Below are positions 3,066-37,189 of a DNA stretch of 64,000 bases, in pieces. The notes below the pieces were generated by a model that worked only from the letters and a program-made list of their open reading frames with translations, had not been told where the DNA came from and did not search any database. The DNA is taken from the sequence record NC_048046.1; one strand, written 5' to 3'. A program made the position numbers and the translations under genes. Every line of letters begins with the position of its first letter. Within the stretch, counting starts at the first letter, position 1.

Positions 3066-3473
3066 ATGTTTTCGAACCTCCCGCCGCACCTCTTCGTTTC
3101 GTCCGCTGGCGGCGACCTCTTCGACACCCGCGACCCGGATTGGAATTTCAAGCCGCCGCTTCGCCGCGCCTATTCGACGGCCGCCGACCCTATCGAGACG
3201 CTTTCTCAGGTCAAGGCGGCCTTGCGGGCGGGTCCTTACGCTTGGCCGGGCGGGTATCCCCTGTATTTCGTCACCCGCGACGGCGCCGCCCTGAGTTTCG
3301 ACGCCGTGCGCTCGCAATTCGCCAGCGTGGCGGATGACTTCATGTCGGACTCCTCGACGGGCTGGCGCGTCTGCCGTGTTGAAATCAACTATGAGGATTC
3401 CGACCTGCGATGCGACCACACGGGGAAAGCTATCCCCGCCGCGCACGGTGACGACGAAGACGAACCGGCTTAA
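3066..3473 (+). CDS. Hypothetical protein (135 aa; AWPGGYPLY motif, C-terminal CDHTG)
   Basis: ATG at 3066 after a CCTGGAG RBS and the box at 2996. This is the plausible 3' part of the 345-aa track ORF. Confidence 0.8.
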   Translation: MFSNLPPHLFVSSAGGDLFDTRDPDWNFKPPLRRAYSTAADPIETLSQVKAALRAGPYAWPGGYPLYFVTRDGAALSFDAVRSQFASVADDFMSDSSTGWRVCRVEINYEDSDLRCDHTGKAIPAAHGDDEDEPA

Positions 3474-3539
3474 CCTTTTGTTAAGAAATAGCCGGTAGGG
3501 TGAAACCTGCCGGCGCATCCCGCGCCCTGGAGCCTGCTT

Positions 3540-3833
3540 ATGTCGCACGTCTATGACATCGAATATACCGACACGTTCGCCGGGGAGGCGAATTACTCAT
3601 GGGTTCGCCGGGCGACCGTGACCATGCCAGAGCTAACCCATTACGGGTATGACGGCGGTTCGAACTACTCCAAGGCGAACAAGGTTTTTAACCGCGAACT
3701 CATGAAGCGCGCCAAGGCCGCCATGGGCCTGACGGGCGTCAAGGGCGTCTCGACCACGCACGGGGACACCCTGGAGTTTCGCCCCTACGGCTCCGCGACG
3801 GTCCTTTTCGCCAACTATCGCGAAATAGACTGA
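3540..3833 (+). CDS. Hypothetical protein (97 aa)
   Basis: Box at 3470, leader hairpin and CCTGGAG RBS; followed by a hairpin at about 3840-3867. Confidence 0.8.
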   Translation: MSHVYDIEYTDTFAGEANYSWVRRATVTMPELTHYGYDGGSNYSKANKVFNRELMKRAKAAMGLTGVKGVSTTHGDTLEFRPYGSATVLFANYREID

Positions 3834-34107: not shown

Positions 34108-34110
34108 GAA

Positions 34111-34407
34111 ATGCTGAGTGCCAAGGAAGCCATGACGCTGATGCCGAGCAGCGATCCCAATCCCTATCTGGATGCGATCGAGCAGCGCATTCGTGAAGCC
34201 GCCGCCGCCGGCCACGGCAAGGTGATGATCCACAGCGTGCTGCCGGTGGCCCTGGCGGGTGCGTGGTGCTGCGGTCGTCCCGGCCCGCTCGCCAAGAAGA
34301 TCGAAGATGCGCTGAAGAAGGTCGGCTACCAGCTTGCCTACGACAGCGGCGGTCATCACGGCCCTGGCTTCGTCGGCATCATGTGGGCCGCCGAAGAGGA
34401 GAAGTAG
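34111..34407 (+). CDS. Hypothetical protein (98 aa)
   Basis: Operonic. Confidence 0.75.
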   Translation: MLSAKEAMTLMPSSDPNPYLDAIEQRIREAAAAGHGKVMIHSVLPVALAGAWCCGRPGPLAKKIEDALKKVGYQLAYDSGGHHGPGFVGIMWAAEEEK

Positions 34408-34408
34408 G

Positions 34409-34885
34409 ATGGCCTACGGCTACTGCCCTAACTGTGGCGGCATGGTGGTCAGCCGCACGCGTGGCGGCCCGAACGCCAAGGACACGTGCATCAACGGGCA
34501 CGTCAATCCTTCACGCATGTCGCTGGCGTCGCCACCGAAGGCGAGTGCCGAAACGCTGTCGCCGGCGCAGTGGACGCAAGGTCTGCAAGCCCTGGTTCCG
34601 GACATGTTCCTCGGCCCGCTCGCCATCGCCGTCTCCTCGCAACACGAGGCCGACGCTCTGCGCGACATGCTGAACGGCGCCAAGGGTCCGAACGACCAGG
34701 GTATCATGGTGATCCCGTTCGGCGGCTCGGTCCTCTCGTTCTCGCCCGGCGGCACCGCGCTGCTGCGCGGCTACGTCTCCATCCCGCCGAACGGCGGCCC
34801 GATCACTCGCCAAGCCTTCGAGGCCTGGATCGAGAAGGCGATCGCGCCGTACCTCGCGCCCAACGCTTCCCGGCTGGTCCTGTGA
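34409..34885 (+). CDS. Zinc-ribbon protein (158 aa)
   Basis: CPNCGG...C.NGH at the N-terminus. Confidence 0.75.
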   Translation: MAYGYCPNCGGMVVSRTRGGPNAKDTCINGHVNPSRMSLASPPKASAETLSPAQWTQGLQALVPDMFLGPLAIAVSSQHEADALRDMLNGAKGPNDQGIMVIPFGGSVLSFSPGGTALLRGYVSIPPNGGPITRQAFEAWIEKAIAPYLAPNASRLVL

Positions 34886-35190
34886 TCGCGCTTCACCAAA
34901 AGTACAACGGGCGGCTCGTCTATCTCCAGCCGGACCAGATCAAGGCCGTGGAGCATCGGGCCAGCGGGGATACGGCCGTAATTGTCGAAGGCATCGACGA
35001 CACTTCGCCGTGGATCGTGGTCGAGACGCCCGAGGAGATCGCGAAGCTGCTGGCTGGCTGGAAGTGGCGTCCGCACTTCCTCAACGAAACGATCCGTGAC
35101 GGCGCGGTGATCACCGCTCTTCGTCTCGACCTTAAGACCAAGGGGCTGGTCCCGACCTACGCCCATCTGCACCTGGAGCAAGTCCATTGA
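34882..35190 (+). CDS. SwrD/FlbD(PF06289)-like protein, paralogue 1 (102 aa)
   Basis: MI.L...NG..VYL.PD.I..VE....DT.VI......WIV.ETPEEI..LL pattern. Confidence 0.6.
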   Translation: MIALHQKYNGRLVYLQPDQIKAVEHRASGDTAVIVEGIDDTSPWIVVETPEEIAKLLAGWKWRPHFLNETIRDGAVITALRLDLKTKGLVPTYAHLHLEQVH

Positions 35191-35483
35191 TCCGCCTGAC
35201 CTCGCCTCATGAGAAGACGTCGGTCCTGATCGCCCCGGATCGTATCGCCGTGGCTTACGCGGACAAGACGGCTGATGGCGTAGCCGTTTCTTCCCTCGAA
35301 ATCGCGGGCTGCGACGGCACCGTACGCGCCTACGAAACGCTCAAGCAAATCGCCGATCTCAAGGTGGCCTGGGAAGAGCGCTACGAGAAGCTCGAAGCCG
35401 CCCACGACGGCGTCGTGTCCTACGTCTTCATCAACTCCGCCGGCGTCGTGGACGTGGCGTTTATGGAAGGGCATGGCGCATGA
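35187..35483 (+). CDS. SwrD/FlbD-like protein, paralogue 2 (98 aa)
   Basis: MIRLT......VLIAPDRI.......V..YETL.QI..L..AWE. Confidence 0.55.
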   Translation: MIRLTSPHEKTSVLIAPDRIAVAYADKTADGVAVSSLEIAGCDGTVRAYETLKQIADLKVAWEERYEKLEAAHDGVVSYVFINSAGVVDVAFMEGHGA

Positions 35484-35887
35484 TCCGCCTCACCATCACC
35501 GACGGCCGCTTCATCTACCTCGCGCCCGAACACATCACTCAGGTCGGCTCGTACGGCGACAAGACCTACGTCACGACTGTCGAACATCCCGACGGTCCGA
35601 CCGGCATCGTCGAGGACCCCTTCGACATCGCTCGCCTGAAGGCCGCCTGGGAACTGCGCTATCACGCGCCCGAGATCGCCGGCGATCTGCCCGTGGCGGT
35701 CTACATGGACCGCAGCGATCCGGAGAACCCGTCGATCCAGTTCCTGTGTTGCGCCATCACGCGCAAGCTCCGCGATCAGCGCGCCGGCACTCGTCCCCAA
35801 AACGGAACGATGGCGCCCGTCAACTTCGCTGGGCTCTTCGACGAAATCTTCGGCGCTGCGTTCCCGAACGATCCGGACAAGCGCTGA
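35480..35887 (+). CDS. SwrD/FlbD-like protein, paralogue 3 (135 aa)
   Basis: MIRLT..DG..IYLAPEHI..V....D.T.V........IVEDP.DI..L..AWE. Confidence 0.55.
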   Translation: MIRLTITDGRFIYLAPEHITQVGSYGDKTYVTTVEHPDGPTGIVEDPFDIARLKAAWELRYHAPEIAGDLPVAVYMDRSDPENPSIQFLCCAITRKLRDQRAGTRPQNGTMAPVNFAGLFDEIFGAAFPNDPDKR

Positions 35888-36102
35888 TGCCTGACCTGGA
35901 AGAGCATCTGCGGATTCTTCGACGCGCGTTCGCGAACTACCACGAACGCAACACCATCTGCCGCGCGGAGGGCTGTGACGGGGGCTACGTGGTGCTCGAT
36001 CAGGAAGACATCGACTGGTTCACCCAAGAGCCGCGACGCACGCCGTGCCCGAAATGCAAGGGCTCGGGTTTCGTACCGCGCCAGATGGAGTTGCCGCTGT
36101 GA
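35887..36102 (+). CDS. DnaJ-type zinc-finger peptide (71 aa)
   Basis: C...GCDGG ... CPKCKGSG. Confidence 0.7.
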   Translation: MPDLEEHLRILRRAFANYHERNTICRAEGCDGGYVVLDQEDIDWFTQEPRRTPCPKCKGSGFVPRQMELPL

Positions 36103-36260
36103 TCCAGGAACCTCGTCCGCTGCTGGGGATGGTGCTCGCCGCCACTTTTCTCTCGCTGTTCGCCATCCTCACCTACCCGCTGCGCCTCATGAACGTGCTG
36201 CCCAGCGAGACCGCTTGGGGCGCCCGCGCCTCCGATATCTTCGACGAAGAAGGCCTCTGA
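36099..36260 (+). CDS. Small membrane protein (53 aa)
   Basis: GTGA overlap; hydrophobic helix. Confidence 0.6.
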   Translation: MIQEPRPLLGMVLAATFLSLFAILTYPLRLMNVLPSETAWGARASDIFDEEGL

Positions 36261-37189
36261 TGCCCAATAAGCCCGACATCTGCCTCTACCATCATCCGTG
36301 CTCGGATGGCATGACCGCCGCCTGGGCGATCTGGACGCGCTGGCCTGACATCGAATTCCTCGGCGTCAACTACAACCAGCCGGTACCGGACCTCGCTGGC
36401 AAGCATGTCCTTCTGGTCGACTTCAGCTACAAGCACGACGTCCTGGTGCAGATCGCGGCGGTCGCCGCCTCGGTCACGATCCTGGATCACCACAAGTCGG
36501 CCCGCGAAGACCTCCAGCCGCTGCTGGATTCCGGCGTGGTCCAGGGCGAGTTTGATATGACCCGCTCCGGCGCCAAGATGGCGTGGGATTACGTCTGGCC
36601 GGCGGATGTCGAGAATCCGTTCGATCGCGAGCACTTCCAGTACCGCAACTACGTGGTCGAGGACGGCGAGTATCGTCGCGGCGTCGGCTATGTGCCGTAT
36701 CTCGTCAAGTACGTGCAGGATCGCGACCTCTGGACCTGGGACCTGCCGGACTCCAAGGAGATCAGCGCCTACATCCAGACCAAGCCGCTGACCCTCCAGG
36801 CCTGGGACAAGCTCGCACACGAACTCGAAGACAGCACGATCTACGACCGCGCGGTTGAGATCGGCGCGATCCTGCTGCGCAAGCAGGAATCCGAGATCGC
36901 CGGCGCCCTGAAGTCGACGAAGCGCCGCATGCGGATCGCCGACTACGACGTCCCGGTCGCCAACGTGCCCTACATCTGGGCGTCCGAGGCCGGCAACATC
37001 CTGTGCAAGGGCGAGCCCTTCGCCGCGACCTACATCGACACGGCGGACGGCCGCTCGTTCTCGCTGCGTTCGGACAAGGAAGACCCGAACGCCGTCGATG
37101 TCAGCGAGATCGCGGCCTACTATGGCGGCGGCGGCCATGCGAACGCTTCGGGCTTCCGCGCGCCGATTGGCTGGGAGGGTCGCTCGTGA
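36260..37189 (+). CDS. DHH/DHHA1-family phosphoesterase (309 aa)
   Basis: YHHPCSDG, VDFSY, ILDHH, QDRDLW and GGGGHANASGF motifs. Confidence 0.85.
   Translation: MPNKPDICLYHHPCSDGMTAAWAIWTRWPDIEFLGVNYNQPVPDLAGKHVLLVDFSYKHDVLVQIAAVAASVTILDHHKSAREDLQPLLDSGVVQGEFDMTRSGAKMAWDYVWPADVENPFDREHFQYRNYVVEDGEYRRGVGYVPYLVKYVQDRDLWTWDLPDSKEISAYIQTKPLTLQAWDKLAHELEDSTIYDRAVEIGAILLRKQESEIAGALKSTKRRMRIADYDVPVANVPYIWASEAGNILCKGEPFAATYIDTADGRSFSLRSDKEDPNAVDVSEIAAYYGGGGHANASGFRAPIGWEGRS

Follow-up and report, generated by a model that had tools for sequence, protein, structure and literature searches.

Three adjacent genes of Caulobacter phage CcrPW, gp068, gp069 and gp070, encode what we consider, at a probability of about 60%, to be old paralogues from a phage branch of the SwrD/RemA/LytTR-like fold, acting as a small oligomerising scaffold. 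The DNA analysed here (the window) is a stretch of 64,000 nucleotides forming the left end of the 308-kb genome of this Colossusvirus (record NC_048046.1); window coordinates equal record coordinates, and all three genes are annotated as "hypothetical protein". A preceding reading of the letters by themselves (hereafter the sequence-only reading) had described three translationally coupled open reading frames (ORFs) at positions 34882-35887 and likened their products to the small flagellar protein SwrD. The coordinates and the coupling were borne out, with a 4-base overlap between each adjacent pair (GTGA, TTGA, ATGA).

gp068, gp069 and gp070 share a unit of about 90 residues

Comparison of the three products by BLASTP linked gp070 to both gp068 (E 8e-9) and gp069 (E 7e-7), and the kinship between gp068 and gp069 was visible only via gp070. 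Profiles of the gp068/gp069 type and of the gp070 type matched each other with 99.65% probability (E 4e-25) over 88 columns. Because the match spans this length, the common unit comprises about 90 residues; the sequence-only reading, which had recognised an N-terminal pattern of about 55 residues, was thus right about the paralogy and too short in its extent. The unit consists of the core, an invariant tryptophan and arginine (AWxxR) and a hairpin. The shared N-terminal pattern does continue as AWE in two copies, gp069 and gp070, and gp068 carries GWK at this point. A domain profile detected exactly three copies in CcrPW.

The identical triplet, in the same order, is present in CcrColossus and in three metagenomic Colossus-like contigs (L003-L005). 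In a tree, the copies resolved into three orthologous clades, A, B and C (support 96/95, 94/95 and 91/93), which makes the triplication an old one. That the genes are real is shown by the conservation of the triplet and by purifying selection on gp068 and gp070, which are 94% and 95% identical between CcrPW and CcrColossus, with ratios of nonsynonymous to synonymous substitution rates (dN/dS) of 0.12 and 0.07, respectively. Moreover, the rare GTG and TTG starts are supported by the invariant M-I-x-L at the N-terminus of the family. The A-type gene of contig L003 (positions ~3355-3687) has been called from an internal ATG (95 aa), and the frame upstream is open and reads V-I-F-L; given that this open frame matches the family start, an upstream GTG is probably the true start. 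In the alignment of 27 C-type sequences, the second of two adjacent cysteines (C91) occurs in at least 90%, with a threonine next to it at the hairpin end; should these proteins form rings, the cysteines could cluster.

Support for remote homology to the SwrD/FlbD family PF06289

Single-sequence comparison with PF06289, whose Pfam gathering cut-off is 24.7 bits, gave 14.9 bits for gp068 (E 0.02; residues 1-56 aligned to positions 1-50 of the 59 in the profile) and 15.2 bits for gp070 (E 0.016), and gp069 had no PF06289 match in the Pfam scan. A six-frame search of the phage reached 16.5 bits, so that all scores remained below the cut-off. Sub-threshold matches were obtained in 6 of the 12 triplet members, and PF06289 was the sole recurrent family. 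Neither the LytTR (PF04397) nor the RemA (PF04025) model detected anything anywhere in the phage at E<=10.

An exhaustive profile search of 1.84 billion (1.84e9) protein representatives returned 129 at E<=0.001, and at least 25 cluster representatives of the gp070 type were recovered from this collection. The phage profile reached P0088, which carries PF06289 and is named YlzI/FlbD by the Joint Genome Institute, at E 1.5e-4. Among 128 relatives, 42 matched PF06289 at E<=0.01 (best 8e-19), no second family recurred, and LytTR was absent. Word-based homologue searches found close relatives only, and pattern scans for the gp070 type returned nothing from genome and metagenome collections and CcrColossus only among viral contigs.

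Alignment of profiles with hhalign, in which three differently composed phage alignments were set against three PF06289 proteins, yielded probabilities of 96.8% (E 3e-10), 96.3% (E 2e-9) and 96.9% (E 2e-10), each over 55-56 columns and collinear from residue 1. In the reciprocal direction, a hidden Markov model (HMM) built from three true FlbD proteins matched gp068 at E 7e-7. The residues common to the phage proteins and FlbD are M1, I2, G9, I19 (kept as Ile in 14 of 15 sequences) and the V-x-E-x-P stretch preceding the helix. At position 15, by contrast, the Colossus-type triplets have Q, D, A, S, P or V but no Asn, whereas Asn occupies it in 45 of the 128 wider relatives. The Pro-Asp-Thr loop between strands 3 and 4 is likewise not kept, being Gly-Asp-Thr in gp068, Gly-Asp-Lys-Thr in gp070 and a variable acidic insert in gp069.

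Together, these results support the N-terminal domain as a remote homologue of PF06289 at the level of a superfamily. The match to the family put forward in the sequence-only reading stands only in this remote sense, carried by the hhalign probabilities, the link to the FlbD protein P0088 and the SwrD topology described below; with scores below the cut-off, Asn15 and Pro-Asp-Thr lost, a structured C-terminal part and no flagellar operon, the proteins fall outside canonical SwrD. The homologous family is indeed PF06289, and not that of the Caulobacter sigma-54 activator also called FlbD.

Predicted fold and comparison with known systems

Crystal structures of SwrD, published in 2026 in a paper that does not mention phages, contain two strands, a 3-10 turn, three strands and a helix, and strand exchange assembles them into hexameric rings; RemA, LytTR, ComK and DUF903 are their structural neighbours, and the LytTR domain resembles two SwrD units (PMC13740483). 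In the AlphaFold2 model of gp070, whose core has a predicted local distance difference test score (pLDDT) of 85-89, the elements follow the published SwrD order and are succeeded by a two-stranded hairpin. The gp069 model (mean pLDDT 87.2, predicted template modelling score 0.78) has the same order and again a hairpin, with strands at 2-5, 12-15, 20-27, 33-39 and 45-48, a helix at 52-63 and strands at 78-82 and 88-92. The likeness to SwrD rests on AlphaFold2 models compared with a published description of topology. In place of a disordered charged tail, the helix is followed by the conserved AWxxR and the predicted hairpin (pLDDT ~84-88); a test of this hairpin as a repeat of strands 1-2 within the phage unit gave no signal.

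The solved structure closest to both models was RemA (Z 3.9, root-mean-square deviation (rmsd) 1.8 over 48 residues; Z 4.0, rmsd 2.9 over 52 residues), and AgrA and other LytTR domains came next at Z 2.9-3.4; the Z-scores were used only as agreement with the sequence evidence. In the ESM Atlas, the gp068 model resembles viral clusters of mixed FlbD/LytTR annotation. The sequence-only reading had named profile and structure comparison with PF06289 as the check on its proposal; the profiles agreed at 96-97% in hhalign, and Foldseek against the PDB returned nothing at E<=0.001.

Relative to SwrD/YlzI/FlbD of Bacillus subtilis and Borrelia burgdorferi, the phage proteins are homologous across the whole ~56-residue core from Met1, keep the order of strands, 3-10 turn and helix, and are likewise small and cytoplasmic. 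They differ in scoring under the Pfam cut-off without Asn15 and the Pro-Asp-Thr loop, in bearing AWxxR, a beta-hairpin and type-specific tails where SwrD has its disordered charged tail, and in being encoded by tandemly multiplied genes away from motA/motB/fliL, in a phage whose host lacks the family. RemA (PF04025; PDB 7BME, 7P1W), the best solved neighbour, is a ring-forming small beta protein of the SwrD fold class (PMC13740483); unlike it, the phage proteins are acidic and lack the helical insert that bears the DNA-binding arginines, and no sequence signal connects the two. LytTR (PF04397; AgrA 3BS1; 3D6W) resembles the core at the Z-scores given above and with a template modelling (TM) score of ~0.6 over gp068 residues 1-91, whereas the phage proteins have no LytTR sequence signal, no detectable internal repeat and no receiver or other partner domain.

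A phage branch with variable copy number

With a broad profile, between 1 and 4 members per genome were detected in all Dolichocephalovirinae tested (Table 1), and Brevundimonas phage Bambus and two metagenomic contigs carry two copies each. The tandem triplet of CcrSC and CcrBL9 is a separate one located after the portal gene, and the fourth copy in these phages retains a SwrD-like Asn-Pro turn; the family members in phiCbK, CcrSC and CcrBL9 are unannotated. In a contig of a related phage (L018, positions 300-998; protein P0012), B-type and C-type domains are fused in one 232-aa ORF, and two domains per chain are also found in P0027, P0049, P0077, P0081, P0094 and P0102; several hits are internal tandem duplications. 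That the paralogues act together is suggested by their coupled tandem genes and by this natural fusion of a B with a C domain in L018.

A Paenibacillus prophage contains a short relative in its early region (RecT, Rep_O, RusA). Searching BFVD with the gp069 model retrieved many phage proteins of 57-80 aa (TM by target 0.65-0.81) from many unrelated phages, several of them carrying the name "Flagellar and swarming motility protein"; these phages infect Mycobacterium, Gordonia, Rhodococcus, Arthrobacter, Enterococcus, Acidovorax and others. Of these hosts, Mycobacterium, Gordonia, Rhodococcus and Enterococcus are not known to have flagella. The orthologous group phrog_8458 ("flagellar protein") was matched by 11 of the 128 relatives (best E 4e-9) and by none of gp068, gp069 and gp070 at E<=1. 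In common with phrog_8458 and the viral entries of that motility name, the CcrPW proteins are short, phage-encoded and FlbD-like; they differ in being longer (98-135 aa versus ~60-75), in their AWxxR-hairpin extension and in missing the Asn-Pro turn common in the short forms.

Exchange of the middle gene

DNA identity between CcrPW and CcrColossus is 85-98% over most of positions 34110-36300. It falls to 38-53% exactly over gp069 (35190-35470; the CcrColossus counterpart is gp066), with sharp boundaries at the gene ends and an amino-acid identity of only 26%, against 80-97% in the DNA on either side. Identity is 77-80% at the gp070 edge and the start of gp071, and 53-70% in the N-terminal half of gp067. 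Furthermore, the B-type alleles depart from the A and C trees: the nearest alleles to gp069 of CcrPW are in contigs L003 and L004, and the nearest to that of CcrColossus is in L005. With these sharp limits and this discordance with the A and C trees, the middle slot has been swapped like a cassette. Linked co-evolution of gp069 with the N-terminal half of gp067 was considered and rejected, since the allele patterns do not co-segregate.

A conserved module around the paralogues

The three genes are flanked by a zinc-ribbon gene and a CxxCxGxG gene, with genes for HD and DHH phosphoesterases nearby (Table 1), and their products are all acidic, the isoelectric points (pI) of gp068, gp069 and gp070 being 6.3, 4.9 and 5.1.

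Table 1. Positions of the paralogues, their parts and their neighbours in CcrPW, and copies of the family in other Caulobacter phages (aa, amino acids)
Feature	Coordinates	Strand	Description
gp067	34409..34885	+	Upstream neighbour, co-conserved (context)
gp068	34882..35190	+	A-type paralogue, 102 aa, GTG start
gp068 parts			SwrD-like core (residues 1-62), GWKWR motif, beta-hairpin, conserved C-terminal end
gp069	35187..35483	+	B-type paralogue, 98 aa, TTG start
gp069 parts			SwrD-like core with acidic insert between strands 3 and 4, AWEER motif, beta-hairpin; hypervariable slot
gp070	35480..35887	+	C-type paralogue, 135 aa, ATG start
gp070 parts			SwrD-like core (1-60), AWELR motif, hairpin (71-90), conserved Cys-Cys (90-91), helix, tail
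Cys90-Cys91 of gp070	35747..35752	+	From the alignment of C-type sequences
gp071	35887..36102	+	Downstream neighbour, co-conserved, 71 aa, CxxCxGxG zinc-finger motif (context)
gp073	36260..37189	+	DHH/DHHA1 phosphoesterase, 309 aa (context); marks the conserved module
phiCbK gp056	L031 2045-2395		1 copy, translationally coupled to a deoxynucleoside monophosphate (dNMP) phosphatase gene
CcrRogue			1 copy
CcrBL10			1 copy
CcrBL9			3 copies in tandem plus 1
CcrSC gp083-085	L032 1755-2592; further copy ~47260		3 copies in tandem plus 1

The order of the module, namely zinc-ribbon gp067, paralogues, gp071, gp072 and DHH phosphoesterase, is shared by Colossus-like and Brevundimonas phages. In CcrColossus, Bambus, L003-L005 and L016, too, the DHH gene (gp073) is found downstream, and in phiCbK it is close by. 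The size of gp073 is that of stand-alone NrnA-type nanoRNases, and its family scores are weak. Across five Colossus-like phages, the C-terminal 74 residues of gp067 are 95-99% identical, which exceeds the conservation of any neighbour, whereas the N-terminal zinc-ribbon half is variable (47-82%); family scans, including an NCBIfam scan without matches, found neither a family match nor a solved homologue for gp067.

The small protein gp071 weakly matched DnaJ_CXXCXGXG (E 0.013) and Anti-TRAP (E 0.032). Anti-TRAP itself, a small zinc protein, has a ring-shaped beta protein as its binding target. In phage Bambus, too, an orthologue of gp071 comes after the SwrD-like paralogues; this order is invariable in Colossus-like and Brevundimonas phages, which makes gp071 a candidate partner of the SwrD-like proteins.

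Discussion

From the homology, predicted fold, conservation, purifying selection, tandem translational coupling and variation in copy number established here, we infer ring formation, co-assembly and a binding partner. Each protein is an acidic, cytoplasmic unit of about 90 residues in which two strands and a short 3-10 turn lead into three further strands and a helix closed by an invariant AWxxR-type motif; an extra beta-hairpin and a type-specific tail come after it. By analogy with SwrD (hexamer) and RemA (octamer or heptamer), neighbouring subunits may oligomerise through strand exchange, and gp068, gp069 and gp070, whose reading frames overlap, may for this reason co-assemble. In such an assembly the conserved core would serve as the scaffold, and the divergent hairpins and tails, above all those of the exchangeable middle copy, would bind the real partner. 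Rather than the flagellar motor, this partner is more likely to be a factor, from phage or host, that takes part in the early or middle infection programme, and the action on it may be exerted jointly with the co-conserved zinc-finger neighbours. The fallback offered by the sequence-only reading, a generic oligomerising module, fits the evidence better than its motor proposal.

Several observations weigh against an oligomerising SwrD-like scaffold. The structural Z-scores of 3-4 are tied with those of PH/PTB/FERM-type folds and prove little alone, and the Atlas model of gp068 aligns to LytTR clusters over residues 1-91 at TM 0.60. Asn15, which lines the SwrD pore, is replaced by Gln, Ala and Ala in gp068, gp069 and gp070, and its mutation renders Bacillus subtilis SwrD insoluble (PMC13740483). 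In addition, the sheet might be completed inside a single chain by the extra hairpin, which would give a LytTR-like monomer and no ring.

The alternative that fares best, and that we regard as improbable, is that the proteins are small nucleic-acid-binding regulators of the RemA/LytTR/ComK kind, in which core and hairpin together would make up either a beta domain like that of LytTR or a ring like that of RemA and so bind DNA, of the phage or the host, in the early or middle programme. The ranking of RemA as top solved neighbour of two models, with AgrA LytTR next, agrees with such a role, as do the Atlas alignment to LytTR clusters and the mixed FlbD/LytTR viral cluster, the location of relatives in phage replication and recombination regions, and the helix-turn-helix domains fused to some viral look-alikes. 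However, PF04397 and PF04025 are silent on the whole phage, unlike PF06289, and the pI of every product lies on the acidic side. In RemA the DNA-binding arginines are located between strands 3 and 4, a position that holds an acidic insert in the B type, and fusion to a helix-turn-helix fits oligomerisation equally well.

We judge it distinctly unlikely that the three proteins act on the host flagellar motor in the manner proposed for SwrD, at the MotA/MotB stator, changing its rotation so that flagellum-dependent phages are kept from superinfecting or the motility of the infected swarmer cell is controlled. A motor role was the function inferred in the sequence-only reading. The homology to SwrD/FlbD detected by hhalign is genuine, at least one copy is present in all Dolichocephalovirinae tested, the rotating flagellum serves phiCbK-like phages in adsorption (PMC3556154), and SwrD raises motor power in Bacillus subtilis and is placed on MotA by AlphaFold; the SwrD-MotA contact itself, however, failed biochemical validation (PMC13740483). 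Moreover, the host species Caulobacter vibrioides, one of the control genomes, gave no PF06289 signal even at E<=10, whereas MotA_ExbB and FliL were detected in it, so there is no host SwrD to mimic. Family-model searches found neither MotA nor FliL in the phage. A true FlbD, P0136, sits in a flbD-motA-motB-fliL cluster, a context that gp068-gp070 lack, the phage copies lying among zinc-finger, nucleotide-metabolism, phosphatase and DHH genes. The features proposed to bind the partner, namely the surface Pro-Asp-Thr loop and the charged tail, are not kept either. The same fold also turns up in phages of bacteria not known to be flagellated (Mycobacterium, Gordonia, Rhodococcus and Enterococcus), which makes a flagellar role unlikely.

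It is very unlikely that the resemblance to SwrD arose by convergence, or as a statistical artefact such as short beta-rich sequences can produce, in an unrelated phage-only family: the single-sequence scores of 15 bits, the empty Foldseek search and the low Z-scores would allow it, but three differently composed profiles agree at 96-97% start to start, the reciprocal HMM and the exhaustive search each connect the phage proteins with true FlbD, the order of secondary structure matches, and M1, I2, G9, I19 and V-x-E-x-P preceding the helix are held in common.

Within the preferred reading of gp068-gp070 as an oligomerising scaffold, a more specific and speculative idea, to which we give little credence, is a mixed SwrD-like ring whose middle subunit is an exchangeable specificity cassette that sequesters or decoys a variable host factor or a small signal. 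If true, it would be a counter-defence or take-over device that phages have built on the SwrD fold, and SwrD-type rings would be general binding scaffolds, not motor parts.

Collectively, our findings place three CcrPW proteins annotated as "hypothetical", together with their relatives in jumbo phages of Caulobacter and Brevundimonas, in a fold family. They also caution that the database label "flagellar protein" on phage genes should not be read as function. The SwrD fold has a large and diverse phage branch, with tandem arrays, fusions and a swapped cassette, which extends to phages of non-flagellated hosts; this branch argues for the SwrD fold as a general oligomeric scaffold.

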